Shown here: in pieces, positions 11,073 through 60,890 of the stretch
How positions within the stretch are numbered: the first letter of the stretch is position 1
Layout of the letters: every line of letters starts with the position of its first letter
DNA from: Macrostomum lignano
Lineage: Eukaryota
Length of the DNA: 64,000 bases
Direction: 5' to 3'
Assembly (NCBI GenBank): GCA_002269645.1
Contig: NIVC01001375.1
Coordinates: 186,001-250,000 of the forward strand
Made by a program: the position numbers and the translations under genes
Notes under the pieces: model-generated
What the model was told of the DNA's origin: nothing
Database searches by the model: none
Seen by the model: only the letters and a program-made list of their open reading frames with translations

Positions 11073-11159
<87 letters not shown>

Positions 11160-38693: not shown

Positions 38694-39117
38694 GAATTTC
38701 AAATAGTGTCTGCAGGTCCTTAACCTTATTGTAATAAATTTTGAAAATGCAGGGACATGCATCAAGGGTCTAGCAAAAATGTGCCAAGGGGTCACTCTCC
38801 AAGATACATGGGCCATATCAAGGGACTATAGTTGCAACAATAAAAGACCCTTTTGTAGTTGCAACAATAAAGAACCTTTTTGCAGTCACAACTTTTTTGC
38901 AGTTTGAATATTAAAAATGTAAGCTTTGATTAAAACTAAACTAATGATACCTATTTATAGCTACTGAAAAAGTTTAGATTTTCAATAACTTGTAGATATA
39001 TTCAACTACATATGTCTAGAAAAACCACTTCTATATTTAATCCTCTTATCATAAATATATATTTCATAAAACTACTTTATGTCAATCTGTTATTGTCATA
39101 CAAGTTTGTTTTACATT

Positions 39118-39903
39118 GGCTCATTCCATATAAGCATGGTCGTAACATGACAGGTTATTTTTACTTATAAAATGAAATCTAATAATAGAATATACTAAAC
39201 CAATATTTTAAATGAAAGATTATTTTGTCTAGAATATATTTATAGAGTTTCATATAGATATCATCATTAGTATAGATGCTATTAAACCTTAAATGACACT
39301 TATGGTCGTAACGACAGGATTTTTGACATATAGAAACTAAAAGGTAAAAGTCTTATAACATTTTTCATTTTTGATATTTTGCAATACATTTTTAAAATTT
39401 GACTAAGAACATCTTTAGAAATCATACTCTTTTATTAGAATATATAAACTCAAAAGGCAACAAAGATACAAAAGAAAAGGCAGCCTTATGGTCGTAACAT
39501 TATGGTCGTAACATATTTTTTTCTGTCAATTCAGTAACTTTGAGGTACTAATACATTAAAAATATAATAGATTATTTGGTCACCAATGCTTTTATCTGAT
39601 GATGCAAGTACTATACTTTTATCTATAGTTTGTTTCAACCTTCAAAAGATTTCTATTTGTTTTTAAAAGGTACAAAATCTTAATGATGTCTTTTGCTTCG
39701 AAAAATGTCCAAATTTTTACAAAAATGACTTTTTGCCAATTGATAACATACTAATCCAACATTTTACCATTCCTTTATTCTTAGATTGTATATATTGCAC
39801 AATATAAACATTTGGTAAAAAAATAGGCTAATTAGGCAATGGCAAGCAAAACTATTGACTTTTTTCTATTTTCCAAATATGTCCATCTTATATGGAATGA
39901 GCC
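39118..39903. mobile_element. 786-bp non-autonomous DNA transposon, 17-bp TIR GGCTCATTCCATATAAG, CATT on both flanks
   Basis: Perfect TIRs at 39118-39134 and 39887-39903. CATT at 39114-39117 and 39904-39907. Internal TATGGTCGTAAC-like repeats. Confidence 0.7.
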
Positions 39904-40258
39904 CATTATATTTTACTGTTTGGTAATTTTATCATATGTCTATTTTTATGTGTGGCTATTTTTATTGGATTCTAAGCATCATGCCAAGTGAGGCTATGCA
40001 TTGCACCACATCAAGCACCATCTCATAGAAAATGTGCCACACCACAGGGTCATTTTGAAAGCATGCCATATTGCAAGGTCATTTTAAAAATGTGTTGGAT
40101 GGCTATTTATCATATAATAGCTTTTTCTAATAGGGCTCCTTAAGATTGAACTTTATATTCCACATAGGTTGTTTTACACTTGTTCACACAAAATTTAAAG
40201 AAACATTTTGACTATGGCCAGGTTGGCTATAAATAGATTTTTAGCCTTTTGCAGTATC

Positions 40259-41054
40259 TTTCATATTAATATTTAGAAGTGCTTATCCCTATGGTCCCAT
40301 GCCAATAATTCCAATTTTATCCACACGGATCCGTGTCAATAATTTCATAGCTTATCCCCATAGCAGCTTATTAAAATAGCTATCACCATTAAAGTCTATA
40401 GGCTGTGTCAATAATTCTAATTTTATCCATATGGATCCATGTCAATAATTTCCTGCTTATCCTTATGGCAGCTTATTGGAATAAAGAACCTTAAAATGAA
40501 TCTGTTTAAAAACCTTTTTGTTTTCACTGTTTTATACATCTTCCAAATAAACTACATGTACTGAATACTGAATAATATCAAGTACTTTGTTAAAACTTTT
40601 CGTCATTAAAAGGGTTAATTTTAAATATTTGCTTAGCTGCTGGCTTTGCTTAGAACAACCAAACAACCCAAAGATCGAGGCAAATGAGACTTGCAAAATT
40701 CAAAATTCAAAATATATTTAATAATAATGATAATATTACTAATAATAATAACAATATCAATTTAATGTCAGTACACAAAACTAAACACAAGCAACTGCAC
40801 AATCTTAGCCATGGGGATAAGCTGAAAATTATTGACATGGATCTATGTGGATAAAATTGGAATTTTTGACATGGATCCATGTGGATAAAATTGGAATTAT
40901 TGACATGGCCTATAGACTTGAATGGTGACAACTATTTCAATAAGCTGCCGTGGGAATAAGCTGGAAATTATTGACATGGATCTGTGTAGATAAAATTGGA
41001 ATTATCAGCAGGGACTATGAGGCAAGGATAAGCATTTCGTTAATATTTATGAAA
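40259..41054. mobile_element. Foldback-type element with about 200-bp internally repetitive inverted arms
   Basis: The arm at about 40259-40480 (tgtcaataattcc aattttatcc modules) is the reverse complement of about 40810-41054. Confidence 0.6.
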
Positions 41055-41780
41055 TATTAAATTTAAATGATTATTAAAAAATAGAAATTAATAAGTATTT
41101 TAAAAGCTTTTTATATTTTTGTTCTTCTAAAATTAAATTGTTGTAAAAGCTAAAAACTAAACTAATATAAGTGAGAAGTCTAAACTCTTAACTTAAGTCT
41201 AAGACGTCAGCAAGCTAGGCCTATGCAATTAAAAATAGCCTAGCAAGTTTTAAAGATGCTCATATTTTTTTAGCAGGATAGAAAAAATTCTAGGGCCTAT
41301 TAAAAAAGCACAATAAATAAAGTAAATAAAACACTCGTTCATTTTTACAGAGTCATAGTCATAGAGCTAGGGTAGGGGCCTACTACATCTCATATTCTCA
41401 TAGTCATACTCTTGCTACAGCGTAAAACCATATAAAGATTAAAACTGAAGTAAAAAGCAAATAGTGGGGCCTAGTCGTATTTGTACTTAGTGGTGTAACC
41501 AGAAATTTGTTGAGGATGGCCTGAGTGGCCTGTATTTTATTAGCAAAAATGTGCTTGGCCCCCTCTGATTTAGCCTTTCCCTTTAGGTTTCTGACAAAGC
41601 GGCGGCTAACCCTCGCCTCCTGTTTGCGCCCTTGTTTGTACTTACTTAGCATGCTTCAACTACGAGCTACCCATAGGCCCTATCAAATCCTTGCAGGCTG
41701 TCCTCAGATTCAGAATAATATTAAAATCCAGCGGCCGACTTCAAGCTGTTCAAGGAATCAATTTCTTCATTAAGTAAGTT

Positions 41781-42150
41781 AAAACACGCCCCGCACCGCC
41801 CTGCAGCGCTACACATTAAAACAAATTGGACTATAACTGAAGACAGTTCAAAATGCGTTTTTTGTTAAGCTTCAAAGTTTTTATTAAATTTAGTTTTTTT
41901 ACTTTAAAATATAAAATTCGGTAAGTAATAAGTGATATTAATAATTATATTAATAAAATAATAATAATATAATTTAATAATGAAAACGAGAATACAAAAA
42001 ATAAAATAATATTTGAAATAATAATTAAAGATATTTATTCCATTACTCTTACAACGAATAGTTTTCTTTGCAATCAAATACTGCATTGACAAAAAATGTT
42101 ATAATGTGTAGCGGTTCGGGGCGGTGCGGTGCGTGTTTGCGTGCGTTTTA
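41781..42150. mobile_element. MITE-like element with about 36-bp inverted ends containing CGCACCGC
   Basis: aaacacgccccgcaccgccctgcagcgctacacatt versus the reverse complement of 42103-42138; AT-rich interior. Confidence 0.5.
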
Positions 42151-43722
42151 GGGAGACCCAGTTAAAACCACATGTTTATTAGCTATAATAAACTAAAACA
42201 AGGTATTAAAATGTATTACAAACACAAGACGGTATCAAACCATAAACAGCGTTAATATAATCTTATGTAGTTTTGCTAATAATTAATCCTATATACTAAA
42301 AATGAAAAGCTTGCTTGCTTGCTTTAATTAATTAAAATTCTAAAATTTGTACCAACGGGTACTTCTCTTCACTAGGCCGAAATTTCACATTGCCAAAAAA
42401 TCATTTTAGCAGCTTCTTTCACTAGGCCGATACTTCACATTGCCGAAATGGCTAGCAAGCTATTTAATAAGTTTCGCCTGTTTCGGCCTAGTGAAAAAGA
42501 CTGCTTTTTCGGCGTTGTGAAATTTCGGCCCCATTAGAGTGTGCTAGCTACTTTGGCAATGTGAAGTTTCAGCCTAGTGAAGTTTTGGCCAAGAGAAAGA
42601 GAGTACTTTCCGGCGAAGTGAAATTTCGGCCGCCCGCATCCTCGGATAACGGGGCGCTTTCACTACTCAAGACTCAGCAATTGTACAAGGACGAAGAAGC
42701 TACGTCGCTGGGAAAATTTTAGGAGGCATATGCTTTTTCGAAAAAAAATTACAGAGATGGATCGAGGTTTAGATTAAATCATTTTGAATTAATTACAAGA
42801 AGCAATTATATGATGACTGATCTGTACTATGTTGTTCGAAAATCGACTTTACAAGTCTATCTGGACACAATCTAGCGGCTTAACTGTGAATCTGGTTTAG
42901 GTCGTTTCGTTAAAAAATTGTTATGTAGTGATCAATAAGATTACAACGCGTTATATTATATTTTTTGTACATGTATTTGACATATTTTTGCGTATTTTTC
43001 TTATATCTATAAGTTAGAGTCTAGAAAACCAACTAGATTTTCCGTTCTCCGTTCATCGAGTACTAGTAGGTTTCGTTATTGCTACTTGTAGTAGCCAAAG
43101 CATTGCTGCTTATCAATTACATGTATATATGTAGGCTCCAACCTGGCGTATCCCTTTAAACCTAACGCCTAGATCGTTCCATAAGAATTCTTTAGTTACC
43201 TTAAGCTGCTTAGAATATAAGCTGCAACCCGGCCTTGCCTGGTCAAGATCTAGAGCGCTTTTTCTTAGTCTGACAAAAGTTAAGTCGTTGGCGGCACTTC
43301 ATACGAGCGTATTCATGACAAATTTATCGATTTTTTAGATTTTATATACGTTATTTTGTTTCAGTCCAGCCAAGTACATATACACGCAATATAAATATAC
43401 TGGAGCGGTATATATTACATGTGAGATTACTAACTTTTCTACTAGCTGCAACTGCAAGTACAACTGCAATACTCAACAAAATATAAGATTTGGTGAGTGG
43501 TCATTTCGATCTTTATACATGCACAATATTGTATAGTGCAGGCGGGTTTCAATTAATAATACATTGCAACGTACACTTCAGTTATCGATTAGCCTTTTCG
43601 GACACTGAAAAAACCAAGGCCAATCTCAAAGCAAAAAAGTAACGAAATGGAAATCGAAACGCGAAAAAACTGAAAGCATGAAACGAGAACCTAAGGTGAG
43701 AAAGCGACGGTAAGAGTTTACG

Positions 43723-44811
43723 ATGGCAAAAGAAGAATCCGACAGCCTTCACGTCAAACTGCTGCTCGAGTATTCCCAGTTTAGGGAAATAGACCGACTC
43801 GCGAGTTGGCTCAAGAAGAGCACTCAACGGTTTCAGCCAGCTGAGCATAGAAATCAGCAGAAAAGGACGAAAATTCAATTCGGTCGTTGGCTCATCACCA
43901 TGCAGACCACCGATGGTCAGCAAATGTCAGAGACATTCCGTCTGCTGCCACAGAATTTGAACGACAACAGAAGCAAAGTTGAGTTCGTGAAATCGCTCTG
44001 CCTGAGCTTCAGCGACATGTCGAGCGACGAAGCGACGCATCTGGTAGAGTCGCTGCTGTCCATGATCGATCAGTTTCTACGAAGAAAGATTAATATCGCT
44101 AAGGTGAAGAAAACTGCGAAGCTGCGATACGAGGAGGCCGGCAACCGAGGCCGCATCACATTTGGGGAGTTCCGGACGCCTAGGAGCAAGCGAGTCAAGC
44201 AGCTGGTCGAGCTGTGCGGTGAGCAGCGGGCCGCGCTGGTTTGCCTTCGCTACCACAGCCTGAACATGTTCAGAGGCGGCGAGTCCAGCCTCTGCCCCAA
44301 AGCTTTCGATGCCCTGTTCGAGCTGGGCAAAGCCGCTCACGAGGGCTTCGCTTCGCCCCTCAATTGTCAGCTGCTGGGTCGGCAAGGAGCAAAATTCTGC
44401 AGCCTGTTCCCTGACACTGACAGCGCATTCGGCAGTCTGGGCGACTTTTTTCACATAGACCTGATGCAGCATCCAGGCGGCTGGGTGCTCAACCCCCCAT
44501 TTGAAGAGATCCTGCTCAAAGCCACAGCGAGGCGAGTTGTGGACATCCTTGACGAGTCGGAGCGGGGAGCTTTCTGGTTCTTCCTCATCTTTCCGTACTG
44601 GACAGACTGCGACGGCTGGCAGATCCTGGACGAGTCCGAGTGGAAAGTTGATAGAATTGATGTGAAGCCAAATCAGCTGGAGGTTCAGGACTGCTTCGGC
44701 TCCACGCTGACTGTGCAGGTCACGGTGAGCCTGTTTACCATGGGGAAGCCGCCAGACTCCGTCAACCTCGCCAAGCTTTGGAACGCGATGAGGACAGACG
44801 CTGGAGAGTAA
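43723..44811 (+). CDS. PCIF1/CAPAM-like N6-adenine methyltransferase, copy 1 (362 aa, uninterrupted ORF, no WW domain)
   Basis: Motifs FGRWLI..LLP (helical domain start), LVCLRY, HEGFASPLNC, FCSLFPDTDSAFGSLGDFF, catalytic NPPF (44491-44502) and FFLIFPYW occur in the same order as in PCIF1 (FNRWML..LLP, ECFASPLNC, YCSAFPDTDGYFGSRG, ANPPF, FIVFIPEW). Confidence 0.85.
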   Translation: MAKEESDSLHVKLLLEYSQFREIDRLASWLKKSTQRFQPAEHRNQQKRTKIQFGRWLITMQTTDGQQMSETFRLLPQNLNDNRSKVEFVKSLCLSFSDMSSDEATHLVESLLSMIDQFLRRKINIAKVKKTAKLRYEEAGNRGRITFGEFRTPRSKRVKQLVELCGEQRAALVCLRYHSLNMFRGGESSLCPKAFDALFELGKAAHEGFASPLNCQLLGRQGAKFCSLFPDTDSAFGSLGDFFHIDLMQHPGGWVLNPPFEEILLKATARRVVDILDESERGAFWFFLIFPYWTDCDGWQILDESEWKVDRIDVKPNQLEVQDCFGSTLTVQVTVSLFTMGKPPDSVNLAKLWNAMRTDAGE

Positions 44812-45457
44812 CGGAAATGGGATCCTATCCAAGAAAGACTAAAGTTTACTGAGTGAAATTTTACATGTATATGAAATTTCTCCGAGCACTGTATCAAAAC
44901 CTTGTCGTTTGTGGTTTGAATGAGGTGTTCAACCTCCGCTCCTCCGTGGCATCCTCCGCGATGTTGATGCAGGCTGTTGCCACAAGCTTTTGTTGATTCT
45001 GGCCATCTGTATTTTGCTGAATTTCAAAACAGCTATACATGTACGTCGTCTATTTTTTGTTTAATCAGTTTTCTTTCTTTTTCTTTTTATAATGTTTTAA
45101 AGGCTTTCTTTTGCTGGTAATTATGGTTTTACGTTACGCATGTATACTCGTCTTATATGTACAAACACCCCATACCATCGGGATTTTCATTTCAAGCCAT
45201 TTAAATTCATTAAACGGTTTCAAAATTGCTCGGTTCGAAAATTCAAGTTGCAGATTCTGATCGGATAGACGTGTTGGAAAAGCAAGACTTTTCATATGTA
45301 CTATCCAGTGTGTCTCGTTATCAGTCCGGATTGCAGATGTTGCAGTGCCCGGTCCCTAAATTCCCGATTACTAAATTCTGAACTCTCTAGAATTTTGGAG
45401 GATTTAAGTTAGACATTTAATTGTTGCATGTGTGTAGGTACCCACATGTGGGTCTAT

Positions 45458-47960
45458 GAAATCTGCTAGCTGAAGTCTGCAAGCCGAAGTCTGCTAGCTG
45501 AAGTCTGCTAGCTGAAGTCTGCAAGCCGAAGTCTGCTAGCTGAAGTCTGCTAGCTGAAGTCTGCTAGCTGAAGTCTGCTAGCTGAAGTCTGCAAGCCGAA
45601 GTCTGCTAGCTGAAGTCTGCAAGCCGAAGTCTGCTAGCTGAAGTCTGCTAGCTGAAGTCTGCTAGCTGTAGTCTGCTAGCTGAAGTCTGCAAGCCGAAGT
45701 TTGCTAGCTGAAGTCTGCTAGCTGAAGTCTGCTAGCTGAAGTCTGCTAGCTGAAGTCTGCTAGCTGAAGTCTGCAAGCCGAAGTTTGCTAGCTGAAGTCT
45801 GCTAGCTGAAGTCTGCTAGCTGAAGTCTGCTAGCTGAAGTCTGCTAGCTGAAGTCTGCAAGCCGAAGTCTGCTAGCTGAAGTCTGCTAGCTGAAGTCTGC
45901 TAGCTGAAGTCTGCTAGCTGAAGTCTGCAAGCCGAAGTCTGCTAGCTGAAGTCTGCAAGCCGAAGTCTGCTAGCTGAAGTCTGCTAGCTGAAGTCTGCTA
46001 GCTGAAGTCTGCTAGCTGAAGTCTGCAAGCCGAAGTCTGCTAGCTGAAGTCTGCTAGCTGAAGTCTGCTAGCTGAAGTCTGCTAGCTGAAGTCTGCTAGC
46101 TGAAGTCTGCAAGCCGAAGTCTGCTAGCTGAAGTCTGCTAGCTGAAGTCTGCTAGCTGAAGTCTGCTAGCTGAAGTCTGCAAGCCGAAGTCTGCTAGCTG
46201 AAGTCTGCAAGCTGAAGTCTGCTAGCTGAAGTCTGCTAGCTGAAGTCTGCTAGCTGAAGTCTTCTAGCTGAAGTCTGCAAGCCGAAGTCTGCTAGCTGAA
46301 GTCTGCAAGCCGAAGTCTGCTAGCTGAAGTCTGCTAGCTGAAGTCTGCTAGCTGAAGTCTGCTAGCTGAAGTCTGCTAGCTGAAGTCTGCAAGCCGAAGT
46401 CTGCTAGCTGAAGTCTGCAAGCCGAAGTCTGCTAGCTGAAGTCTGCTAGCTGAAGTCTGCAAGCCGAAGTCTGCTAGCTGAAGTCTGCTAGCTGAAGTCT
46501 GCTAGCTGAAGTCTGCTAGCTGAAGTCTGCAAGCCGAAGTCTGCTAGCTGAAGTCTGCTAGCTGAAGTCTGCTAGCTGAAGTCTGCTAGCTGAAGTCTGC
46601 TAGCTGAAGTCTGCAAGCCGAAGTCTGCTAGCTGAAGTCTGCTAGCTGAAGTCTGCTAGCTGAAGTCTGCTAGCTGAAGTCTGCAAGCCGAAGTCTGCTA
46701 GCTGAAGTCTGCTAGCTGAAGTCTGCTAGCTGAAGTCTGCTAGCTGAAGTCTGCTAGCTGAAGTCTGCTAGCTGAAGTCTGCTAGCTGAAGTCTGCTAGC
46801 TGAAGTCTGCAAGCCGAAGTCTGCAAGCCGAAGTCTGCAAGCTGAAGTCTGCTAGCTGAAGTCTGCTAGCTGAAGTCTGCAAGCTGAAGTCTGCTAGCTG
46901 AAGTCTGCAAGCCGAAGTCTGCTAGCTGAAGTCTGCAAGCCGAAGTCTGCTAGCTGAAGTCTGCTAGCTGAAGTCTGCAAGCCGAAGTCTGCTAGCTGAA
47001 GTCTGCTAGCTGAAGTCTGCTAGCTGAAGTCTGCTAGCTGAAGTCTGCTAGCTGAAGTCTGCTAGCTGAAGTCTGCTAGCTGAAGTCTGCTAGCTGAAGT
47101 CTGCTAGCTGAAGTCTGCTAGCTGAAGTCTGCTAGCTGAAGTCTGCAAGCCGAAGTCTGCTAGCTGAAGTCTGCAAGCTGAAGTCTGCTAGCTGAAGTCT
47201 GCTAGCTGAAGTCTGCGAGCTGAAGTCTGCTAGCCGCGAAGCTTGCCAGCAGGAATTTTGCTAACAAGGATTCAGCCGAACTCACGAAGTTTTAAGTCGT
47301 CAGAGACAAATTTGCTTGTCCGATTTCGCGAGAAACTGAACAGGACGATTCGATTTGCGCTTAATCGCTCTTTATTGACTCTCCTTTTGTCGTGTTGATT
47401 AGCAGTGACGCAAATCTCTAACTATAAAAATGAAAACTCTGTGTGTCTGTGTACAAATTTGTTCGCTATGGCCTACTATGGTATAGACTCCCAAATCACT
47501 CAACCAAACTACACCAAATTTTGCACTCAGAATAAACTCACTACAGAGAATGTCTTAGGCTACCCTAAATTATTCCTATATCTAAGTCTTCCTATCTAAA
47601 AGTGCAAAAACGGCTAAAAGCGTGATTTTTTTACTAAATTCTTTATAGCGTCGCTCCACTTTTTCGAATCCTCTTCAAATTTAACAAAAACAATTTTCAA
47701 CTATTTTGACACGCTCGTGTAAAATTTCGAGTTTTAAAGTTAATCCTGAACGGCGCTGTGCACTTTTAAAGTTATTCTGCTTTTTTTTCAGCGAGACCCA
47801 CCCCAACCTCCGCCTCTCTCCCTCCCTTATCTGGCCAGATGTTTGAAAGGGGTTTCAAAATTACCTTTGCCTGAAAACAAGCAATCTTCGCGGCTAGCAA
47901 ACTTCAGCTAGCAGATTTCGGCTGGCAGATTTCGGCTAGCAGATTTCCTGCTAGCAAATC
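45458..47960. mobile_element. Inverted-repeat element whose left arm is a 1.8-kb 14-bp satellite (GCTAGCTGAAGTCT / GCAAGCCGAAGTCT)
   Basis: Array at 45458-47236; inverted copies of the same unit at 47881-47960. gctagccgcgaag occurs inverted at both inner boundaries. The core at 47415 onward resembles a non-autonomous Helitron 5' end (low confidence). Confidence 0.6.
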
Positions 47961-48905
47961 TCGTACTTCCGGTACATGTACTTAGCGCTACATGTACATT
48001 CATTACATAGAAAACGATAGTGTAAAATTTGCGTAAAGTGTGTGTCTAAAGTTTGTATAATAAAATTGCGGCAAAAGCCCGGGGATTTAGTTCGGGAGGA
48101 AGGGCTATGCCACGGGGGAGGCAGTAAATATATAGCTCGTAGTCGTAGGCAGTAAAAAAAGGGAGCGTTGTAGAAAACTAACGATTGAATTACTGCTGAT
48201 TTTGAACTGCATAGAAAAAAGGAAAAGACCAGGCTTGAGAGCCAGCCCTTCATGCAGCGTATATTATTTATAAAACTAACGCAGGGGGGTTGAGTCGAGA
48301 ATAATAAAGGGAGGGGTGGAATAGATAAGAAACCAAATTGGGGGGGGCTAGCCGATCGATAAATAGTGGAAGAGAGAAAACGCTAACAATGTACAAACAG
48401 AAGAGAGAGAGGAAAATTAAACAAGGCTAGGCAAACCTGAGGGCGATCGAGTGAATTATTCTAAGGGCAAAATAACAGAATTTCGCGACAGGCAGAGCAG
48501 AGGCAGTACGAGCGTAAATATACTGGCGTATGTTTTCTCTGAGTACACTGGCAAGAGTGAGCTTGGCTGTACAGCAAGTACAGCCTGAGTTTGAGGCTTG
48601 GAAGTGAAGGCATTAAGGATAGGGAGAAATACTGCAGGGATGTTGGGCAACAGCCGCACGTTTTTGAAAAGCAAATTCTACCAGCAGCAGTACTCGTATG
48701 AAAAAACAACTTAGTGAGGCATCTGAGATTTTGTGAGGTGGATTAAGAACTTTGCGTAGCAACCAGGTCAGCTTCATCTTCCGTGTAAAGCTGGGTCGTG
48801 TAAAAGATCTCAAAGCAAAAATAAACAAAATGGAAAGCGAAAAGCGAAAAAACTGAAAGCATGAAACGAGAACCTAAGGTGAGAAAGCGACGGTAAGAGT
48901 TTACG

Positions 48906-49994
48906 ATGGCAAAAGGAGAATACGACAGCCTTCACGTCAAACTGCTGCTCGAGTATTCCCAGTTTAGGGAAATAGACCGACTCGCGAGTTGGCTCGAGAA
49001 ACGCACTCAACGGTTTCAGCCAGCTGAGCATAGAAATCAGCAGAAAAGGACGAAAATTCAATTCGGTCGTTGGCTCATCACCATGCAGACCACCGATGGT
49101 CAGCAAATGTCCGAGACATTCCGTCTGCTACCACAGAAGTTGAGCGATAACAGAAGCAAAGTTGAGTTCGTGAAATCGCTCTGCCTGAGCTTCAGCGACA
49201 TGTCGAGCGACGAAGCGACGCGTCTGGTAGAGTCGCTGCTGTCCATGATCGATCAGTTTCTACGAAGAAAGATTAATATCGCTAAGGTGAAGAAAACCGC
49301 GAAGCTGCGATACGAGGAGGCCGGCAGCCGAGGCCGCATCACATTTGGGGAATTCTGGACGCCTTTGAGCAAGCGAGTCAAGCAGCTGGTCGAGCAGTGC
49401 GGTGAGCAGCGGGCCGCGCTGGTGTGCCTTCGCTACTACAGCCTGAGTATGTTCAGAGGCGGCGAGTCCAGCCTCTGCCCCAAAGCTTTCGATGCCCTGT
49501 TCGAGCTGGGCAAAGCCGCTCACGAGGGCTTCGCTTCGCCGCTCAACTGTCAGCTGCTGGGTCGGCAAGGAGCAAAGTTCTGCAGCCTGTTCCCTGACAC
49601 TGAAAGCGTATTCGGCAGTCTGGGCGACTTTTTTCGCATAGACCTGATGCAGAATCCAGGCGGCTGGGTGCTTAACCCCCCATTTGAAGAGATCCTGCTC
49701 AAAGCCACAGCGAGGCGAGTTGTGGACATCCTTGACGAGTCGGAGCGGGGAGCTTTCTGGTTCTTCCTCATCTTTCCGTACTGGAGAGACTGCGACGGCT
49801 GGCAGATCCTGGACGAGTCCGAGTGGAAAGTTGATAGAATTGATGTGAAGCCAAATCAGCTGGAGGTTCAGGATTGCTACGGCTTCACGCTGACTGTGCA
49901 GGTCACGGTGAGCCTGTTCACCATGGGGAAGCCGCCAGACTCCATCAACCTCGCCAAGCTTTGGGACGCGATGAGAACAGACGCTGAAGAGTGA
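48906..49994 (+). CDS. PCIF1/CAPAM-like N6-adenine methyltransferase, copy 2 (362 aa, intact)
   Basis: Collinear paralog of copy 1 with scattered substitutions. FASPLN and NPPF (49674-49685) are intact. Confidence 0.85.
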   Translation: MAKGEYDSLHVKLLLEYSQFREIDRLASWLEKRTQRFQPAEHRNQQKRTKIQFGRWLITMQTTDGQQMSETFRLLPQKLSDNRSKVEFVKSLCLSFSDMSSDEATRLVESLLSMIDQFLRRKINIAKVKKTAKLRYEEAGSRGRITFGEFWTPLSKRVKQLVEQCGEQRAALVCLRYYSLSMFRGGESSLCPKAFDALFELGKAAHEGFASPLNCQLLGRQGAKFCSLFPDTESVFGSLGDFFRIDLMQNPGGWVLNPPFEEILLKATARRVVDILDESERGAFWFFLIFPYWRDCDGWQILDESEWKVDRIDVKPNQLEVQDCYGFTLTVQVTVSLFTMGKPPDSINLAKLWDAMRTDAEE

Positions 49995-50679
49995 CGGAAA
50001 CGAAATCCCCTCCAATAAAAAATAAATTTTACTGAGTGACATTGTACATGCATATGAAATTCTTTGAGCACGGCATCTAAACCTAGTCGTTTGTGGTTTG
50101 AATGAGGTGTTCAACCTCCGCTCCCCCGGCTCCTCCGCGATGTTGATGCAGACTATTAACAAACTGACGTTTTTTTGCAATCCGTTACGGTTGTTTTCAG
50201 GGCAACCGTGACCGCCCTTTTTACGTATTTTTGTTGATTCCGACCAACTTTTTTTGCCGAATTTCAAAACAGCTATACGTCGTCGTCGTCTATTTTTGGT
50301 TTTCATCCGTTTTCCAGTTTTTCTTTCTATAATATATTTCAAATGCTTTATTCTTCTAGTACGCTCGTATTTATGGTTTTATGCGCTCGTTATGCATGTA
50401 AATTCGTCTTATTTGTACAAAAACATCGTACACATTTACTCCAGCCATAAAGCATTTAGCTACCCCAAGCACTTACTAGGACTGGCCTGGGATTTCCATG
50501 GCTCAAATGGATTTCCCTAGCCTATAGACCATAGATTACATGACTTTGATCACGCATCTAAGTCGTGATGGATTCTACCTATGCACATAGACAAACCAAT
50601 GATAGCCTTTGGGTAAATGCCTGGAGTAATCAGCCGGAGAAATCAATTGAAGAAAACGAATCATGTCGTTTTAATAGTA

Positions 50680-51020
50680 GCGTTTTAATACTATATACTG
50701 TCATTTTAATATTGGCGTTTTAATAGTACCGTTTTAATAGTAGCGTTTTATTAGTAGTTTTTTAATACTACTGTCATCTTAATATTAGCGTTTTATTAGT
50801 AGTGTTTTAATAGCAGCGTTTTATTAGTAGCGTTTTAATACTATCATTTTAATAGTATTGATAGTATTTTAATAGTAGCGTTTTAATAGTAGCTATTTAA
50901 TAGTAGCGTTTAATTAATAGCAGCGCTTTAATAGTAGCGTTTTAATACTATACTGTCATTTTAATATTAACGTTTTAATAGTAGCGTTTTAATACTACTG
51001 TCATTTCTATAGCACCGTTT
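50680..51020. repeat. AT-rich about 14-bp repeat TTTTAATAGTAGCG
   Basis: Visible repeat. Confidence 0.8.
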
Positions 51021-52634
51021 TAGCGAGCAATTTAATCCTTAGGGGGAAATAAAGCTATTTAAGACTTGCTTTTGATTGTCTATGGCCCAAAAATGGTCTA
51101 TAGAGCAACCAATTAGAGAATTTGGTCGCGCTATTAATCTTTCCATAGTTTGCAAGCCTTAGACCATAGAAATAACAGTTTTCATTAAACAAACTTAGAT
51201 ATGGCAGACGAAGAATTTATAGCGAGCAGAGCAGTGACGAAAGTTTTGCTACAGCTACAGCTACAGCCCAAAAAGATGCAGTGGATGAGCAGAATCCTGC
51301 ATTGATCGGGTTTGATTTCAATCTGTCCAACACTGTTTTGAGAAGACGTGTACGATTGTTCTCGGCTTATACTGTATGCTATAGTTTTGCCTTTGCCTGT
51401 TTAATTGATTTCTATGAAATCAAAGTGTTAATGTCAATCGTTTTTGATATGCCATCTATTTTCAGGCGTTATTTCAGTGAAGTTATTCGTGAAGGATATA
51501 CGAGAACTGTGAAAAGGATTAATTGCAGATTAATTTGTCACTCGGTGTTTGGCGTGCAGGTACCGTCGGCGTTAAGGCTTGTCAACTACAGTGTATCTTT
51601 TCCGCAGTCAAGACGCTATTAGAAAACGAGTCTGACTTTGGTGCAGTTACTGCAATTAAAGCCTTACGATCGTCGGAACCTCCTGATGGAGTATTCGCTG
51701 ACGCGCCTGATGACGTAGCCCGCATACATCCGTCGTATTGTACTGCACTGTAGCCGGCGGCAAACGATGAAGCGTCTGTGCTGTTTTCAGCACTTTGTTA
51801 CTGCATGCCACTATCCAGCCATTTCGTTGTCAGTCCGGATTGCATAAGGCGCAGTGCAGATTCTGAGCCATAATACATAATAGTACAATTAATATAAAAA
51901 AACACATGTCCATAGTACAATTTCCATAATACAATTTTCTTTTTTTCTCGCTTTTCCGATGGTCCCCCAATGCTGCATTGCTCTGTAATTTTTATTTATG
52001 ATTTGAATGTACTCGATTTTTCCAATTAAAACACCGCGGATACCGGCATTACTATTTTAGAAACCGGTTTTGCATTCAAATTCACCAAGCGGAATGTCAT
52101 TGCTATTTCTGTTGCGACATTGTGACTTTTAAGTCTTTTGGCAAAACAACTAAATTCCATATTCCTAAATTCTGAGCTCTAGAAAATTTTGGAGGATTTA
52201 AATCAGATATTTGTTTGTTGGATTCTATAAAGCTCGTACAGGACGCCACTTTAAAATAGGTACATGTACCTGGCGCTACCTGTACATTTAATACATGGAA
52301 AACAATAAGTAAAACTTGCGTAAAGCGAGGTGTTTAACGTGTGTATAATAATTGCGTCAAACGCGTGTACCTGTACATGTATTTTGCTTACATGTGCGTG
52401 TGTTAATCATTTAAAAAGTGACAAAATTATGTAATTTACGTACGCGTGTTTTACGCGCAGCGATCTACGTGTACAACGTACGTTTTTCGCGCCGAAGAAG
52501 AGAAATGCAGCGTATTCAATTCTATCCTCCTTCCCAATTTTAAAATTCAAGAATTGAGTTTTCGATTCGACAAAAATTTAATTTTGCATCTATAATTTCT
52601 AGTTCAGACTAGATAAGAAAACGGTTTTCGCACT

Positions 52635-52980
52635 TGATGAGTGAAGGATTAATTATTGAACTTCCTGAGACATTAATTATTGCACTAGCTGAGGCATAGA
52701 TTATTGCACTTGATGAGTAAAAGATTATTGCAATTGATGAGTAAATGATTATTGCACTAGATGATCAAAGTATTATTGCACTAGCTTAGAAAGTGATTAT
52801 TAAAATACATTAGGAAAGGTGTATTGCACTTGATGAGAAAAAGATTATTGCACTAGATGAGAAAAGAAATATTCCACTGGCTGAAAAAAATAACGATTGC
52901 ACTAGCTGAGACATGGATTATTGCACTACCTGAGAAAGTGATTATTGCATCAGCCAAGGAAATAGTTGCACTAGTGTAGC
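52635..52980. repeat. About 21-bp degenerate repeat ATTATTGCACTAGATGAG
   Basis: Visible repeat. Confidence 0.75.
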
Positions 52981-54508
52981 TTAAAGTATATTCAAATTTA
53001 GAAAGCATATATACGCTTTCTATCTTGCTTGCTTTTGCTTGCTATCTGGGGGTGCTTGTTATTGTATTTGGGGGGAGGGGGGCGCTTGCTATTGTATTTG
53101 GGGGTGCTTACTATCTGGGGGATGCTTGCTATCTGGGGGGATGCTTGCTGTCTTGGGGATGTTTTCTATTTAGTGGCAATGCTTGTTATCTTTGTGAAGG
53201 CTTTATTTTTTGTCTTTTTGTTACTTTCAGACTTAAAATATTCATAGCAAACATCTTTGTCCGTGACAATTTTACTAGAATAAGGTGATTTATAAAACTG
53301 AAGAAGGAATTTGTTCTTTAAAAAATGTGCTTTTTTAATGGATCTGCATGAATAATTTTTTCTCCGTGCTTATTGGGCTTTTTGCTTATTTGCTTATTTG
53401 CGAATTTTGCTTATATATTTCTACTGTAAATAGAGTCTTAAGAATCTACTAAATTTTCGGGTAATGTAGCTCCTTGATGAAAAGTAAGTAGCTAGATGAA
53501 AGAGAAGTAACCAATATGAACTGTATTAGGTTTTTCAATGTCGATGCATTTCGTCCACAATGGACATCGCTATGTACATAAAAGGCCCCACAACCTACTC
53601 TGAGCAGTCAGCTTGCCATAAGGGATGCTAGCCGTCAACTTCGTAAATTTTTTTAGCTCGCTCAAAAACCGGACTGGACACTGATTTGATATGTAGCACG
53701 CCTTTCCATCCAAACTTGTACTGTACCCAGTTTTTTTCTTAATTTTTACTGCTCTGTCAAATGTTACAACTTCTCAAGACAATATATAAGAACAATTTCT
53801 TACTTCGTTTGATAAATTTAGTGAGCCCTGACGATGTCCATTATGGACTAAAAGCATCGGCATTGAAAAACCTAATACAGTTCATATTGGTTATTTCTTT
53901 CATAAATTTTCCGTTCAACGCTCATCGCGTACTCTGGTGGTTTGGTCCATGTATTGCTAGTCAAAAGTATTGCTGCTTATCGTCTACATATATGCCTCAA
54001 CCTAGCTGGCGTATATAAGCGTAACTCTAACGCCTATCGTTATATATACAAGCTGGAGCCCGGCCTTGCCTGGTCAAGGCTAGAGCGCTTTTTCTTATGC
54101 TGACAAAAGTTAAGTCAGTCGACTGCACTTCATATTTATGACAAATTTTAATCTATTTTTCAAATTTTCTTACGAGCCAGCCAAGTACATACAGTATAAA
54201 AATAAATATACCGGAGCGGTATTAGCATGTAAGCTCACTAACTTTTCTAAATGTACTGCAACTGCAAGTACAACTGCAATACTCAGCAAAATTGAAGAAT
54301 TGCTGAGTGGTCATTTGTATAGTGCAAGGTGAGTTTCAATTAACATACATGCAACGTACACTTCAGTTTATCGATAGGCTTTTTTAGACACTGACCAAGC
54401 AAGGCCAATCTCAAAGCCAAATAATAAACAAAATGGAAAGCGAAAAGCGAAAAAACTGAAAGCATAAAGCGAGAACCTAAGGTGAGAAAGCGACGGTAAG
54501 AGTTTACG

Positions 54509-55598
54509 ATGGCAAAAGGAGAATACAACAGCCTTCACGTCAAACTGCTGCTCGAGTATTCCCAGTTTAGGGAAATAGACCGACTCGCGAGTTGGCTCGA
54601 GAAACGCACTCAACGGTTTCAGCCAGCTGAGCATAGAAATCAGCAGAAAAGGACGAAAATTCAATTCGGTCGTTGGCTCATCACCATGCAGACCACCGAT
54701 GGTCAGCAAATGTCCGAGACATTCCGTCTGCTGCCACAGAAGTTGAGCGATAACAGAAGCAAAGTTGAGTTCGTGAAATCGCTCTGCCGGAGCTTCAGCG
54801 ACATGTCGAGCGACGAAGCGACGCATCTGGTAGAGTCGCTGCTGTCCATGATCGATCAGTTTCTACAAGGAGAGAGTGACATCGCAAAGGAGGAGCAAAC
54901 TGTGCAGCTGCGATACGAGGAGGCCGGCAGCCGAGGCCGCATCACATTTGGGGAGTTCCTGACGCCTAGGAGCAAGCGAGTCAAGCAGCTGGTCAAGCTG
55001 TGTGGTGAGCAGCGGGCCGCGCTGGTGTGCCTTCGCTACCACAGCCTGAACATGTTCAAGAGCGGAGAGTCCAGCCTCTGCCCCAAAGCTTTCGATGCCC
55101 TGTTCGAGCTGGGCAAAGCCGCTCACGAGGGCTTCGCTTCGCCCCTCAATTGTCAGCTGCTGGGTCGGCAAGGAGCAAAATTCTGCAGCCTGTTCCCTGA
55201 CACTGACAGCGCATTCGGCAGTCTGGGCGACTTTTTTCACATAGACCTGATGCAGCATCCAGGCGGCTGGGTGCTCAGTCCCCCCATTTTAAGAGATCCT
55301 GCTCAGAGCCACAGCGAGGCGAGTTGTGGACATCCTTGACGAGTCGGAGCGGGGAGCTTTCTGGTTCTTCCTCATCTTTCCTGACTGGACAGACTGCGAC
55401 GGCTGGCAGATCCTGGACGAGTCTGAGTGGAAAGTTGACAGAATTGATGTGGAGCCAAATCAGCTGGAGGTTCAGGATTGCTACGGCTTCACGCTGACTG
55501 TGCAGGTCACGGTGAGCCTGTTCACCATGGGGGAGCCGCCAGACTCCGTCAACCTCGTCAAGCTTTGGGACGCGATGAGAACAGACGCTGGCAAGTGA
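54509..55598 (+). pseudogene. PCIF1/CAPAM-like methyltransferase, copy 3, disrupted
   Basis: A +1 insertion in the catalytic Asn codon region (AAC CCC CCA to AGT CCC CCC A, about 55277) plus GAA-to-TAA at 55290-55292. The C-terminal remainder is ORF 55326-55598. Confidence 0.85.
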
Positions 55599-56539
55599 CA
55601 GAAATGAGATCGTATCCAATAAAGTAAAAATTTTACTGAGTGACATTGTACATGCATATGACATTTCTCCGAGTACTCGTACTTGTATTAAAACCTTGTC
55701 GTTTGTCGCAATTTTTAATGCATCTCTTTAGTTCATCTGCACTCCCCTCTGTTTACTCTATTTTCTCTCCAACTTTCCAGTTCAGACTTGTTGTCTCTCT
55801 CTCCCTCCCCTCTTTGTCTAGTAAAGTCTTGTTATTCTTATCTCTCTCCCTCGTGGCCTTCTGATTGGTTCTTCAATCTGGCCTCTTTCCTCAGTCGCGC
55901 ATTCTAACCCCCTTACCTCTGTTTACTCTGTTTTCTCTCCCGTTTGTCCAGTTCAGTCTTGTTATTCTTGTCTCTCCAATCGCTGCTTTCTGATCGGCTC
56001 TTCAATCTGCATTGCCTCTTTCCTCAGTCACGCACTCCTGCCTTTTCTAATCTGGACTCAATCCCCATCCCATAATTTAATACCTTATATATAGTTTTGC
56101 GCCTCGTTAATCGATTCGTATTAATGCATTAGTTTTTACCGAGTATAAATTACTTGAGATACGAGCGTATAAAAAAAATATTCAATCGTTTATCTTATTT
56201 TTCTCTACATCGTTACTACCGAAATTTTACCTAAACATTGGTAGTAAATCCATTCGATTGATTTACGAGCTACCGGAGACGACAAGTACATTCATTTATA
56301 CATAATAGCCTCGTACAATTGTATATTGATGAGGACGAACTTTTTCCAATTCTACATTTGCAAATCGGATGCTTACAATATGCACTACTGGCAGTAGGCT
56401 ACAAGTGTTTTTTAACTTCTCACTATTACTAAATTTGTGTGTTTGGCATTTATTGCTTTGCTTTCCTAGGTCAGTTTGTACTACGAATTCAATATTTAGT
56501 TCTGCTTGTTAGGCCAGATTCATATTTCTTTGTCTGTGA

Positions 56540-57290
56540 GACTAGGGCGGCAGTTGTGACATCGGACGACGTCGTTCTTGGGTACTGCGCACAGGCCTCC
56601 CTGACGACTCCAACGGATTCTTGCTCTGTCGCAGAACAAGCAGGCGACACCCCAGGAGAAGCGACTATCCGTCCTAGCGGACGTCCTAGACTCTATCCTA
56701 GCGCTGCTGTCTAGCTCAGCTGAAGGAGCTCAACGCCTGCTAGACCAGCTGACGGCGGCGGCCGCTGTGCAGTGATCAGCGGTCTAGTGCCAAGCATCAT
56801 GGACGACATGGCACGGCGCAGGGCGCTTTCCTGGGGTGCATTCCGCACGGTGCGGACTGTCCTGCAGTGCCTAGCGCTGCCGGATCGGCTGAGAAGGCGG
56901 CTGTTCCAGGCAGTCATAGAAACGGTCCTCCTTTACAATACCAAAAGGTGGACACGGACCGGCCCACAAGAGCGGCAACTCGACACCGTTCATGCTGGAT
57001 TTACGCGAGCCGCCTTCTGTGTCTACTACTCGCCGACCGCCACCACCAACACCAGCTGCTGCGCATGCGACGTTTACAGCTGGCCGGTCATGTCATCCGA
57101 GAAGAGCATTACTGCCCTGAGCCACTGCAGGACGCGCTGCTGCTCTCCCGTCAAGGACCGCGGCGGCTTGGTCAGACAAAAAGTCTGCGTTTCATTGACC
57201 TGCTTAATTCTAAGAGACGCTGAGATTTCTAACCCTCGTGGACTCGCTGTTCTGCGCAACTCTGCGCTTGCGCGCGCATTTTGACTCCAG
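56540..57290 (+). mobile_element. 5'-truncated, degenerate non-LTR retrotransposon (RTE-like reverse transcriptase C-terminal half)
   Basis: Frameshifted segments read ILALLSSSAEGAQRLLDQL (decayed post-YADD region), RRALSWGAF..LFQAVIETVLLYN..W and LRMRRLQLAGHVIR, typical of RTE-clade RT C-termini. Confidence 0.8.
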
Positions 57291-57615
57291 CCCAGCTAGG
57301 CTTGTCTAGGGCTGCTGTAGTTTGCTTTTGTTGTTGTTGTTTCACAGAAATTGCGTGTTGTCCATGGCACAACCTTATCTTTATTCTATGCTTAGTTAAA
57401 AGTATTTTTTATAGTTACAGTACCTGTACTGTTCATGTACTGTTCATCTACTGTATTCTATCTTCATTACCAATTTTACACAAAAAATGGAGTTTTTCAT
57501 GCGAAAAAATAAAGAAATTATTGCACATATACTTGCAGTAGAAATACGTGCAAATACATAGTTCACATATTTTAATCAGTTTGCAATTTTGTTTGTAGTC
57601 AGCGCAATTTTAATA

Positions 57616-59437
57616 TCAATCTTCACCCTCGTCCTCATTGATCGGAGTCAATTTTTCGTCCTTGACTTCTCCAGCCTCCGCGCCGCCTTCCCCTTCGCCG
57701 CTTGCGTCTGGGGTGCCATCGACGCTAGTGCCATTCTCGGCGCCGTTTCCGTCGTCCGTCGATCCGGGAAGCGGCTCGGGACTGCCGTAGTTTGGCGGCT
57801 CCGGCAGCAGCTCGTATCGCTTGGCGTAGACGCTCGGAGCGAAGCCGAACGCATCGAGAGCGGTGTCGCTCTGTTCGACAGACTTGGCGGCGGCCGCCTC
57901 GCGAAGAATTTCAACAAAGTTCTGGCCGGCTCCGTAGGCATAGTGCAGCGGTAGGCGGCCAAAGCTGTCAGCGAGTCGAAGCAGGTCTGGGTGCTCGTTG
58001 GCTAGGTAACGAGCAGTGTCTTGGTTTTTGCAAAGCAGGGCAATGTGCAGCGCCGAGAGGCTCTCTCTAGTGCGAGAGAACACATCTTCAATTTGCTGCT
58101 GATCTTGCAGTTGCTTGCAGTGCTGCTCCAGATGCTCTCGAGTGCCTTTGGCGCTGAGCTTCCACAGCTCCCTGTAGCGAGCCTCCCACTTGGACACGGA
58201 GTCCACAATTAGCTTGCTGGCCTCCGGCAGACCTTTGAGCTTGGGACCGAACGACTTTTTCAGGCTTGGCAAACTGCTCCCATAGTCGTTGGCCAGCAGC
58301 CAGCGGAGGTGTTCGACTTTCTCTTCGCGCATCCAACGGATCACCAAACTGTCAAGCTCCTTGACAACGGCGTCGTTTTTAGTGGCTTGAGCTGCGTCGC
58401 GAACGTTCATTCCCTGGAATATGTTAGAGATTTTCCATTAGACACTTTTCGATCTGTTTAATTTTCAGAACTGTCAGCCCCTGTAGGCTATGCATTCGTT
58501 AGGAAAAGGGCATTTTACGTTTCTCAAACTCCACAACCCCCCAATCACAACCGACTTCCCTCTCCCAAAACTTCATTCTGATGCCGTGCAACACCCTGAA
58601 ACCGACGAATATCGGCCAAACGTCGGTGTTACAAGCACCTAAAAGTGTTCATACACCAACGACTTTGGGTAGATGTGAGAAACATCGCGGAAATAGCGGA
58701 ACTATGCTTCAAAATTCTTGTTGACCGAATTTCACCTTGTTCAATGTTAATTCTGCTACTTCAGAAGTCCCAATTTGTAGAATACCTTGGGTGAAAATAG
58801 AGTTGTGAAAGCATCCACAAAAAGCGCACCAGCTCAATCCAGCATTCATCGACGCCCTCACCTGTGCGTCGCGAGCGCAGAAGTTGTGCCCATCGTGCAG
58901 CATTCGCAGCAGAGTCTCGACATCGCAGCTGGATCGCACCGCCGCGTGCAACGGCGTCGCGCCGGTTTTGTTTCGCGTCTCGCCTCGCTTCGACGGCAGA
59001 GCGAGCGTCTCAACCGGTACAGACTGGCGCAGCTGCTCCAGCTCCTCGCGACGACGCTGCTCTTCGCGCTCACGTTGCAGCCGTTGCTCCTCGGCTATGG
59101 CCCGTTGTCGCGCCTCCTCCTGCAGCTGGCCAATGCGCGCCTGGCGAATCTCTTCAATCTCTTCGTCGCGTTCTCGACAATAATCGACGGTTCGACGATA
59201 GTTCATCAGACGCTGGGCCACGAACTCGATCGGATCGTCCGGACGGCAGGCGGCCGCTTCGGATAATGCGAGGGCGAGCGCGCTGCCAACAGTTTCACGA
59301 GCGTAGACTGAGTCCGGATGCTGCTGCTCGTCAATGACGAAGGATTTGGGCTTAGGAGCTCGGAGGAACATGTTGTGCACGTCGGAGTTGGCCGGCGTCA
59401 CCTGGTTAGGATCGATTTCGATTTCTGAGCTGGCCAT
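57616..59437 (-). CDS. Dpy-30 (DYDC-like dimerization/docking) motif + coiled coil + ankyrin-repeat protein, 2 exons, about 457 aa
   Basis: Exons 59437-58862 and 58413-57616, phase 0, GT-AG. Dpy-30 motif YARETVGSALALALSEAAACRPDDPIEFVAQRL, an E/R/Q coiled coil, and ankyrin signatures GATPLHAAV, SALHIAL and GRLPLHYA. Confidence 0.8.
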
Positions 59438-59609
59438 TTGTGTTGTCGGATGGAGCCAAATGAAGCAGAGAGAATTGTTCTGTATGCCTTTAGCTATAGA
59501 GTCTAGATTGAAATGTAAAGAGCTAAATAACTGCTTGGGGGCTAGAGCTGATTGCTGCCTTAGCTACCACTCCCTAGCAACAGCGTAGGGTAGAGAGTTA
59601 GGGGATGAG

Positions 59610-59881
59610 GGGCTATGCCATGGGGAAGGCAATAAATGTACACCGGCAAGAGTGAGCCGGGTGTACAGCAAGTACAGCCCGAGTTTGGGGCTTGGAAGTG
59701 AAGGCATTGAGGATAGGGAGAAATAATGCAGGTGTTGGGGACAGCCGCACGCTTTTGGAAAGAAAATTCTACCAGCAGCAGTATGAAAAAACACCTGGTA
59801 AGGGATTTGAGTACGAGATTAAGAATTTTGCGTAGCAACCAGGTCAGCTTCATCTCCTCTGTGTAATGCTGGGCCGTTTAC
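59610..59881. repeat. Dispersed about 270-bp repeat; a second, interrupted copy lies at 48106-48135 plus 48543-48802
   Basis: Direct alignment by eye of gcaagagtgagc..gaagtgaaggcatt..gcgtagcaaccaggtcagcttcatct. Confidence 0.75.
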
Positions 59882-59969
59882 ATGCTATGCAATAAACTGG
59901 ATAGAGGCTTTGGATTCAATGATTTCACTTCAATCAGGATCCCTTTGTCCGCTTAAATCCCTATGCGCC

Positions 59970-60890
59970 CCGACACCCATAGTGGCATCTCGACACCCTT
60001 AGTGGCATCTCGACACCCATAGTGGCATCTCGACACCCATAGTGACACCTCGACACCCATAGTGACATCTCGACACCCATAGTGGCATCTCGACACCCAT
60101 AGTGACACCTCGACACCCATAGTGACATCTCGACACCCATAGTGGCATCTCGACACCCATAGTGGCACCTCGACACCCATAGTGACATCTCGACACCCAT
60201 AGTCACACCCCGACACCCATAGTGGCATCTCGACACCCATAGTGACAACTCGACACCCATAGTGACATCTCGACACCCATAGTGGCATCTCGACACCCAT
60301 AGTGGCATCTCGACACCCATAGTGACATCTCGACATCCATAGTGGCATCTCGACACCCATAGTGGCATCTCGACACCCATAGTGGCATCTCGACACCCAT
60401 AGTCACACCCCGACACCCATAGTGACATCTCGACACCCATAGTGACATCTCGACACCCATAGTGACATCTCGACACCCATAGTCACACCCCGACATCCAT
60501 AGTGGCATCTCGACACCCATAGTGGCATCTCGACACCCATAGTGGCATCTCGACACCCATAGTCACACCCCGACATCCATAGTGGCATCTCGACACCCAT
60601 AGTGACACCCCGACATCCATAGTGGCATCTCGACACCCATAGTGACACCCCGACATCCATAGTGGCATCTCGACACCCATAGTGGCATCTCGACACCCAT
60701 AGTGACACCCCGACACCCATAGTGACATCTCGACACCCATAGTGGCATCTCAACACCCATAGTGACACCCCGGCATCCATAGTGGCGCTCTGAAAACCAT
60801 AGTGACACCTTGACAACCTTAGTGGCACCCCAACACCCATTAGTGGCGCCCAGACACCCCTAGTGGTGCCCCGACATCCATAGTGACGCT
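59970..60890. repeat. 20-bp minisatellite CGACACCCATAGTGGCATCT
   Basis: Exact 20-bp periodicity with variant units. Confidence 0.97.

Follow-up and report, generated by a model that had tools for sequence, protein, structure and literature searches.

To our knowledge, the biology of PCIF1 is known almost entirely from a single, WW-tethered vertebrate enzyme. This enzyme, PCIF1/CAPAM (PDB 6IRV-6IS0), is ~700 aa long and is the cap-specific writer of N6,2'-O-dimethyladenosine (m6Am). Drosophila Pcif1, a single canonical orthologue, retains the WW domain and binding to the C-terminal domain (CTD) of RNA polymerase II (Pol II). The fly orthologue is described as catalytically dead (PMC10158991). 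CAPAM can catalyse methylation without its WW domain, and it binds the cap between its helical and methyltransferase domains (PMC8287941). Here we describe a stretch of 64,000 nucleotides from the flatworm Macrostomum lignano (contig NIVC01001375.1, positions 186,001-250,000), referred to as the window, whose positions are used below unless another sequence is named. The window carries three plus-strand units of a compact PCIF1-like gene, with starts at 43723, 48906 and 54509. The account that we favour, and consider rather probable, is that these units are a young, DNA-level triplication of a gene for compact PCIF1/CAPAM-type, S-adenosylmethionine (SAM)-dependent adenine-N6 methyltransferases, which belong to an expanded family. 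The units are as follows.

43723..44811, plus strand: copy 1, an intact, intronless coding sequence of 362 aa with EGFASPLN and NPPF (N257)
48906..49994, plus strand: copy 2, an intact, intronless coding sequence of 362 aa with NPPF kept
54509..55598, plus strand: copy 3, a pseudogene; its open reading frame (ORF) spans 54509-55339 and has 276 codons

The spacing of the units, 5183 and 5603 bp, agrees with that given for collinear units in a first-pass annotation of this DNA. The same annotation listed three ORFs of ~362 codons, which holds for copies 1 and 2 and fails for the pseudogene, copy 3. Copies 1 and 2 share 93.6% amino-acid identity, and both read GGWVLNPPF at the catalytic loop and EGFASPLN at the SAM-site motif, so that the FASPLN and NPPF motifs claimed for them are intact. 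An exact-sequence database look-up of copy 1 found no record. When searched with Pfam PF12237 (gathering score 31.1 bits), all three copies scored above the cut-off, with 100.4, 97.8 and 60.4 bits for copies 1, 2 and 3, respectively (E=1.1e-28, 7.1e-28 and 2.2e-16). Using phmmer against PDB sequences, copy 1 matched only CAPAM/PCIF1 (6irx/6irv, E=1e-10). A profile termed A3, in which copy 1 is one of 12 compact-subfamily sequences, matched CAPAM at E=2.6e-24 over the methyltransferase core only. The AlphaFold2 (AF2) model of copy 1 had a predicted local distance difference test score (pLDDT) of 72.8 and a predicted template modelling score (pTM) of 0.71; helices were predicted at residues 2-34, 41-54, 82-96 and 101-125, and pLDDT was <50 at residues 36-85. 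Foldseek with this model placed six CAPAM entries from human and zebrafish on top (6irv/6irw/6is0; E 1.7e-12 to 2.2e-10, TMq 0.50-0.53), by a wide margin over the next fold, which was 7-9 orders of magnitude worse (E=5e-3). Pfam, phmmer and Foldseek therefore agree on the identification of the products as PCIF1/CAPAM-like methyltransferases, with NPPF present in copies 1 and 2. As modelled, the intact proteins consist of a short helical N-terminal region (residues ~1-165 in copy 1), followed by a PCIF1-type methyltransferase core of Rossmann fold with EGFASPLN and NPPF.

The flatworm proteins share with vertebrate CAPAM the PF12237 family, the NPPF loop, FASPLN and a helical region before the Rossmann core. 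In contrast to CAPAM, they have neither the WW domain nor the linker, are 362 aa rather than ~700 aa long, and have a helical region of ~165 aa without detectable sequence similarity to the large helical domain of CAPAM; their genes are intronless, multi-copy and variable in copy number. The short helical region and the missing WW domain had both been proposed in the first-pass annotation. No WW domain was found in the copies by Pfam at E<=1, and the motif W-x(19-24)-W-xx-P/G was absent from all open plus-strand stretches of 36000-54508, a search by regular expression over stop-free stretches that is weaker than one with a hidden Markov model (HMM). Because the WW domain is missing, the proteins cannot dock on the Ser5-phosphorylated Pol II CTD as animal PCIF1 does.

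Two indels further distinguish the flatworm proteins. These are a 5-residue LLGxxG insertion before FCSLFPD (the 5-aa insertion) and GGW before NPPF (the 2-aa insertion, at a GGW/GxW site). Both are missing in human and zebrafish CAPAM and in chytrid and dinoflagellate PCIF1-type proteins, which have SGSF before NPPF. An exhaustive HMMER search of 1.84 billion representatives gave 2148 clusters with E<=1e-3, of which 623 had E<=1e-10, and 95 of the best 148 representatives were 280-450 aa long. The 5-aa insertion was found in 138/217 aligned sequences and a 4-aa form in 14/217; every M. lignano paralogue and 10 viral ORFs are among the sequences with the insertion. The A3 alignment and HMM cover positions 1-355 in many sequences, and the short helical region of the subfamily carries an (E/G)RW(L/F) motif. 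Since the flatworm proteins align end to end with compact relatives of 300-450 aa and share indels with them, they are not shortened animal PCIF1 proteins but belong to a separate subfamily.

M. lignano has at least six groups of such genes, namely Mlig030305 (the subfamily of the locus), Mlig015920, Mlig021227, Mlig000263, Mlig008908 and A0A1I8J898. Together with tandem arrays at other loci (L047 and L002), they bear out the claim of an expanded family. Mlig015920 has 372 aa and 39% identity, and GPPF replaces NPPF in every annotated member of its branch (P0040, P0189, P0190 and P0041); because of this replacement, the branch is probably catalytically dead. L047 has two intronless Mlig015920 copies (3280-4395 and 10001-11116), 6.7 kb apart, only one of which is annotated. 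On L002 (NIVC01002568.1, 8600-14837) there are three tandem Mlig000263 units ~2.5 kb apart, annotated as a single 1283-aa protein, Mlig000263g6; this could be either a polycistronic precursor or a fused gene model. A 1.2-kb interruption is present in units 1 and 2 of L002 and missing from unit 3. One M. lignano paralogue, P0003, has introns. The loss of catalytic capacity described for the fly protein is paralleled by Mlig015920 (GPPF) and by the dead copy 3, whereas copies 1 and 2 keep the catalytic Asn. A neighbour-joining (NJ) tree on 322 columns placed four unlabelled sequences and all M. lignano paralogues in one clade, with 88% bootstrap. On a 131-column core, the Macrostomum clade had 54% support and there was no deeper resolution; the position of the M. 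lignano clade relative to viral and environmental sequences was unstable among the NJ trees. A literature search found no study of flatworm or giant-virus PCIF1-like proteins of this kind. The locus is thus a young tandem expansion within a lineage-specific family that is annotated in databases and unstudied.

The origin of the array was examined on two Mlig_3_7 contigs, L050 (NIVC01000381.1) and L049 (NIVC01000013.1). L050 carries copies 2 and 3, ordered as in the window, and is collinear at 95-99% nucleotide identity with positions 48278-64000; its copy 2 differs from that of the window by 3 nt. Because L050 independently shows these two copies in the same order, the array is not an assembly artefact, and the concern that the copies could be assembly or haplotype duplicates was settled in favour of real copies. 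L049 has the same ankyrin-to-TYW1 interval with one intact copy only, so that copy number varies between M. lignano contigs (1 vs 3). The upstream flank of the L049 copy matches the window from 43080 back to ~35865, on the copy 1 side, and its downstream flank matches 55943-60544, on the copy 3 side. Because the single L049 copy joins the upstream flank of copy 1 to the downstream flank of copy 3, the array is a DNA-level tandem duplication of one ancestral gene, and the L049 flanks are those expected of unequal crossing-over. These flanks, the absence of a poly(A) tract, and homology that runs 400-500 bp upstream, beyond any transcript, lead us to reject the earlier suggestion of retroposition. 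There was likewise no target-site duplication at the locus. Among the copies, dS was 0.045-0.078, compared to 0.084-0.095 against an unlinked paralogue, Mlig030305g1 on NIVC01004180.1 (the L001 paralogue).

The lesions of copy 3 are grouped near 55275-55293 and comprise AAC->AGT, one extra base and GAA->TAA. The first of these is N257S, by which NPPF becomes SPPF, and the last is E261stop after frame restoration. The sequence at the catalytic motif is CTCAGTCCCCCCATTTTAA in copy 3 vs CT(C/T)AACCCCCCATTTGAA in copies 1 and 2. The extra base lies in a run that is C6 in the window and C5 in L050, and is therefore present in the window only. Since L050 has N257S and the stop as well, copy 3 is a real pseudogene whatever the length of the homopolymer. 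At ~54865-54910 (codons 119-132), copy 3 of the window reads QGESDIAKEEQTVQ, as does the L001 paralogue, while copy 3 of L050 reads RRKINIAKVKKTAK, as do copies 1 and 2. The swapped segment suggests a gene conversion tract or allelic exchange. Antisense ORFs at 44077-44832 (minus strand, 251 aa) and 49260-50342 (minus strand, 360 aa) had no Pfam match and were rejected as genes; ORFs of this length arise over copies 1 and 2 because they are codon-aligned with the sense frame, in which TTA, CTA and TCA codons are rare.

If the intact proteins are active, they would methylate the N6 of adenine in RNA, most plausibly of the cap-adjacent adenosine, which would be enclosed, as in CAPAM, by the helical region on one side and the catalytic domain on the other. 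The enzymes would be free-standing and recruited by something other than the CTD, or would work without recruitment. Candidate substrates in the worm are m7G-capped mRNA, spliced-leader RNA and other RNA. The link to RNA comes from the homology to CAPAM and from fusions in relatives. In environmental sequences, single ORFs fuse the PCIF1-like domain to XRN (P0199, P0104), Rpb2 (P0139), Rpb1 domain 5 (P0089), a viral-type poly(A) polymerase plus GT8 (P0087) and a ResIII/Helicase_C helicase (P0137). Because these fusions are to mRNA-biogenesis enzymes, the WW-less module appears tied to mRNA synthesis and 5'-end metabolism. They also suggest that direct fusion replaces CTD tethering in genomes of relatives that lack the CTD. 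By inference, CTD-independent N6-methylation of adenine in RNA is a likely activity of the intact copies.

Several observations weigh against this account. One of the three copies is dead, copy number is variable, and dN/dS (the ratio of nonsynonymous to synonymous rates) is high for an essential enzyme. In copy 1, mutations have removed both of the AATAAA motifs that copies 2 and 3 have after the stop (44835-44850; AAGAAAGACTAAAG against AATAAAAAATAAA). The Mlig_3_7 annotation, which was built from RNA-seq transcripts (PMC5730564), has no gene model on the L049 or L050 copies. With the A3 profile, the N-terminal region showed no sequence similarity to the CAPAM helical domain; given this dissimilar N-terminus and the low-confidence residues 36-85, the cap pocket may not be conserved. 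Finally, enzymes of the NPPF type include DNA and rRNA/snRNA (ribosomal and small nuclear RNA) adenine methyltransferases.

The first of these observations raise the possibility, which we regard as real though on balance unlikely, that the locus copies are dispensable, decaying duplicates whose ORFs have merely escaped a hit, while the working gene lies elsewhere, as Mlig030305g1 on NIVC01004180.1. Copy 3 is dead in L050 as well as in the window, the contigs differ by 1 vs 3 copies, and copy 1 has lost its AATAAA motifs. The L001 paralogue (361 aa, 87% amino-acid identity) has the transcript-derived gene model that the locus copies do not have. In many pairs dN/dS is 0.45-0.8, with values of 0.53-0.63 in comparisons with copy 3 of the window and of 0.64-0.80 with the L001 paralogue. 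However, dN/dS between intact copies was lower, at 0.32-0.47 (Fisher p 0.0007 to 0.10). It was significantly below 1 for copy 1 vs the L049 copy (0.32, p=0.0007) and for copy 1 vs copy 2 (0.45, p=0.018), showing that the intact copies are under weak but detectable purifying selection. Two ORFs of 362 codons are still intact at dS ~0.065, their catalytic and SAM-site motifs are untouched, and the 5' leader is conserved, even in the diverged L001 copy. The missing gene models may reflect multi-mapping reads, which could hide transcripts of the locus copies. Transcription is therefore supported for the subfamily, by Mlig030305g1, and not for the copies at this locus.

A second possibility, which fits either functional reading, concerns the source of the family. 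It may have begun as an endogenised viral gene, acquired horizontally by the flatworm lineage from a giant virus, and then expanded. Giant viruses supply the only relatives of known provenance for the compact branch, some of which are fused to RNA polymerase subunits, XRN or poly(A) polymerase. In IMG/VR, relatives were found at 40 giant-virus loci, mostly as ORFs of 330-430 aa with NPPF, and some of these ORFs match copy 1 residues 2-358 and 13-356. Structural matches in BFVD came from Bodo saltans virus, Cafeteria roenbergensis virus and Tetraselmis virus 1, and from Pithovirus and Hokovirus metagenome-assembled genomes and Salmon gill poxvirus. These loci and named viruses confirm the compact WW-less relatives in large DNA viruses that the first-pass annotation had mentioned. 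The giant-virus PCIF1-domain proteins, those on IMG/VR GVMAG contigs included, are, like those of the flatworm, ~315-440 aa long and WW-less, with a short helical region and a methyltransferase core; the Cafeteria roenbergensis virus protein E3T4I2 has 362 aa, as have copies 1 and 2. They keep NPPF, and part of them share the subfamily insertions.

On the giant-virus-like contigs, a GT8 glycosyltransferase repeatedly adjoins or is fused to the compact PCIF1-like gene:

L003 8892-10999; L004 5986-7968; proteins P0044, P0048 and P0087: GT8 association

A transfer from viruses would account for intronless genes, for 5-aa and 2-aa insertions that are shared with IMG/VR giant-virus sequences and not with the canonical types compared, and for the size of the named viral homologues (315-440 aa). 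The nearest relatives outside Macrostomum (P0045, P0048 and P0054) are encoded on dense, intronless, ORFan-rich contigs, and M. lignano was the only named animal recovered in the database searches. In contrast, the M. lignano clade is nested in no viral subclade. At 322 columns it branches as sister to all the rest, a relation that is unstable. The paralogue P0003 has introns, and the four unlabelled sequences inside the clade have a different base composition; their presence there implies that the family predates M. lignano. The relatives are mostly metagenome proteins without a label, which could come from protists, and the viruses may have been on the receiving side. The flatworm paralogues group in a clade of their own, with 27-36% identity to viral proteins, and unlike the viral genes they lie between ordinary animal genes, syntenic across contigs. 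The locus has no viral flanking genes, its flanks being PI3K, TYW1-like and ankyrin/Dpy-30 genes. A recent viral insertion was rejected, as both Mlig_3_7 contigs keep this gene order and have one or more copies of the gene. Viral capture of the flatworm family is hence possible on this sequence evidence, but we consider transfer from a giant virus unlikely.

It is more doubtful still that the substrate is something other than the cap-adjacent adenosine, such as internal RNA adenines, snRNA, rRNA or DNA (N6-methyladenine, 6mA). The (D/N)PP(F/Y/W) chemistry is common to DNA and RNA adenine-N6 methyltransferases (PMC8287941), and Foldseek gave weak matches to phage Dam-like enzymes. The helical region, which forms half of the cap pocket in CAPAM, is of half size here and without sequence similarity. 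However, strong structural and sequence matches were to CAPAM only, Dam-like and other methyltransferase folds being at least 7 orders of magnitude worse, and the fusion partners of the relatives are mRNA-biogenesis rather than DNA-metabolism enzymes.

That the copies are a retroposed or exon-truncated canonical animal PCIF1, or exons spliced to an upstream WW exon, would suit intronless genes of about half the animal PCIF1 length but is extremely improbable, given the in-frame TAA 12 nt upstream of the copy 1 ATG in purine-rich sequence with no pyrimidine tract or acceptor-like tract, the lack of a WW-like motif in the open plus-strand stretches searched, the 361-aa orthologous model Mlig030305g1, the end-to-end alignment and distinguishing insertions shared with 300-450 aa relatives, and flanks duplicated at the DNA level without poly(A) tract or target-site duplication.

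The repeat structure of the locus was obtained by BLASTN self-comparison. Each copy shares ~1.25-1.7 kb of DNA with the others, made up of the gene, ~100-500 bp upstream and ~110-450 bp downstream. The common non-coding blocks reported earlier on both sides of the copies were thus found, but they are short.

43215..43722, plus strand: upstream block of copy 1, whose last ~110 nt are conserved in all copies and the L001 paralogue
44812..45165, plus strand: downstream block of copy 1, shared with copy 2 (49995-50421)
45457..47234: 14-bp minisatellite TGAAGTCTGCTAGC in 127 copies, which takes up much of the spacer separating copies 1 and 2
48543-48799: dispersed repeat with 83% identity to 59638-59877, inside the ankyrin gene region
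48807..48905, plus strand: upstream leader of copy 2, conserved
54046..54508, plus strand: upstream block of copy 3, homologous to that of copy 1
55599..55706, plus strand: downstream block of copy 3, shared with copy 1
57616..59437, minus strand: flanking host gene Mlig028381, with ankyrin and Dpy-30 motifs (Pfam)

Upstream homology extends over ~110 nt in all copies and ~500 nt between copies 1 and 3. The remaining ~400 nt of the copy 1 upstream block have counterparts only upstream of copy 3 (54046-54508) and in L049, and the homology of copy 2 to the other copies breaks at ~-100, where the dispersed repeat adjoins. The conserved ~110 nt may be a 5' leader or a core promoter and hold two short upstream ORFs. 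The A-rich leaders (43640-43722, 48825-48905 and 54425-54508) each have two such ORFs of ~8 and ~11 codons, and the first upstream ATG of the conserved leader is missing in the L001 paralogue. Downstream homology covers ~115 nt in all three copies and ~450 nt between copies 1 and 2; beyond 55706 the sequence runs into the flank that is also found downstream of the single L049 copy. The ~5 kb spacers between copies are unrelated to each other.

The surrounding genes, identified by Pfam, are PI3K exons, a TYW1-like flavodoxin/radical-SAM gene and an ankyrin/Dpy-30 gene, in which the ankyrin ORF 57616-58410 (minus strand) has 99% identity to Mlig028381g1. Introns and spacers of these neighbours are full of minisatellites, and the intronless copies stand between them, consistent with the earlier description of uninterrupted genes amid intron-rich animal genes. 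Because ordinary animal genes flank the array and the synteny recurs in Mlig_3_7, the array is chromosomal animal DNA and not contamination. An Rfam search of the window gave no RNA family match. At 28200-35085, three nested, 100% complementary inverted repeats (arms of 2117, 1601 and 652 nt) lie over the TYW1-like region; as their arms are perfectly identical, they suggest that the assembly folded back on itself or that a palindrome arose very recently. A 170-aa ORF at 56772-57284 (plus strand) resembles by eye the C-terminal part of a non-long-terminal-repeat (non-LTR) retrotransposon reverse transcriptase and had no Pfam match.

M. lignano is a tractable regenerating animal with transgenesis and RNA interference. 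Going beyond the favoured account of a triplicated compact methyltransferase gene, one speculative and improbable reading is that this animal keeps, and repeatedly amplifies in tandem, a giant-virus-type PCIF1 that marks RNA 5' ends beyond co-transcriptional m6Am, or that marks self and non-self RNA. Such a system would have active (NPPF) and dead (GPPF) branches and would work without the Pol II CTD. Its targets might be spliced-leader or trans-spliced mRNAs or cytoplasmic RNAs, or it might tell self from viral or transposon RNA. Copy-number variation, gene conversion and fresh pseudogenes would then be signs of conflict-driven evolution. Our analysis produced nothing in favour of the RNA-marking or defence system that had been put forward in the first-pass annotation. 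What the locus does provide is a separate, multi-copy, WW-less branch of PCIF1 in a tractable animal. If its products are inactive or silent, the locus would be only an example of heavy tandem gene turnover in a recently duplicated genome. If the worm enzymes are active, the family would offer a compact enzyme for biochemistry and a handle on adenine-N6 methylation, cap-adjacent or other, that is uncoupled from the Pol II CTD.

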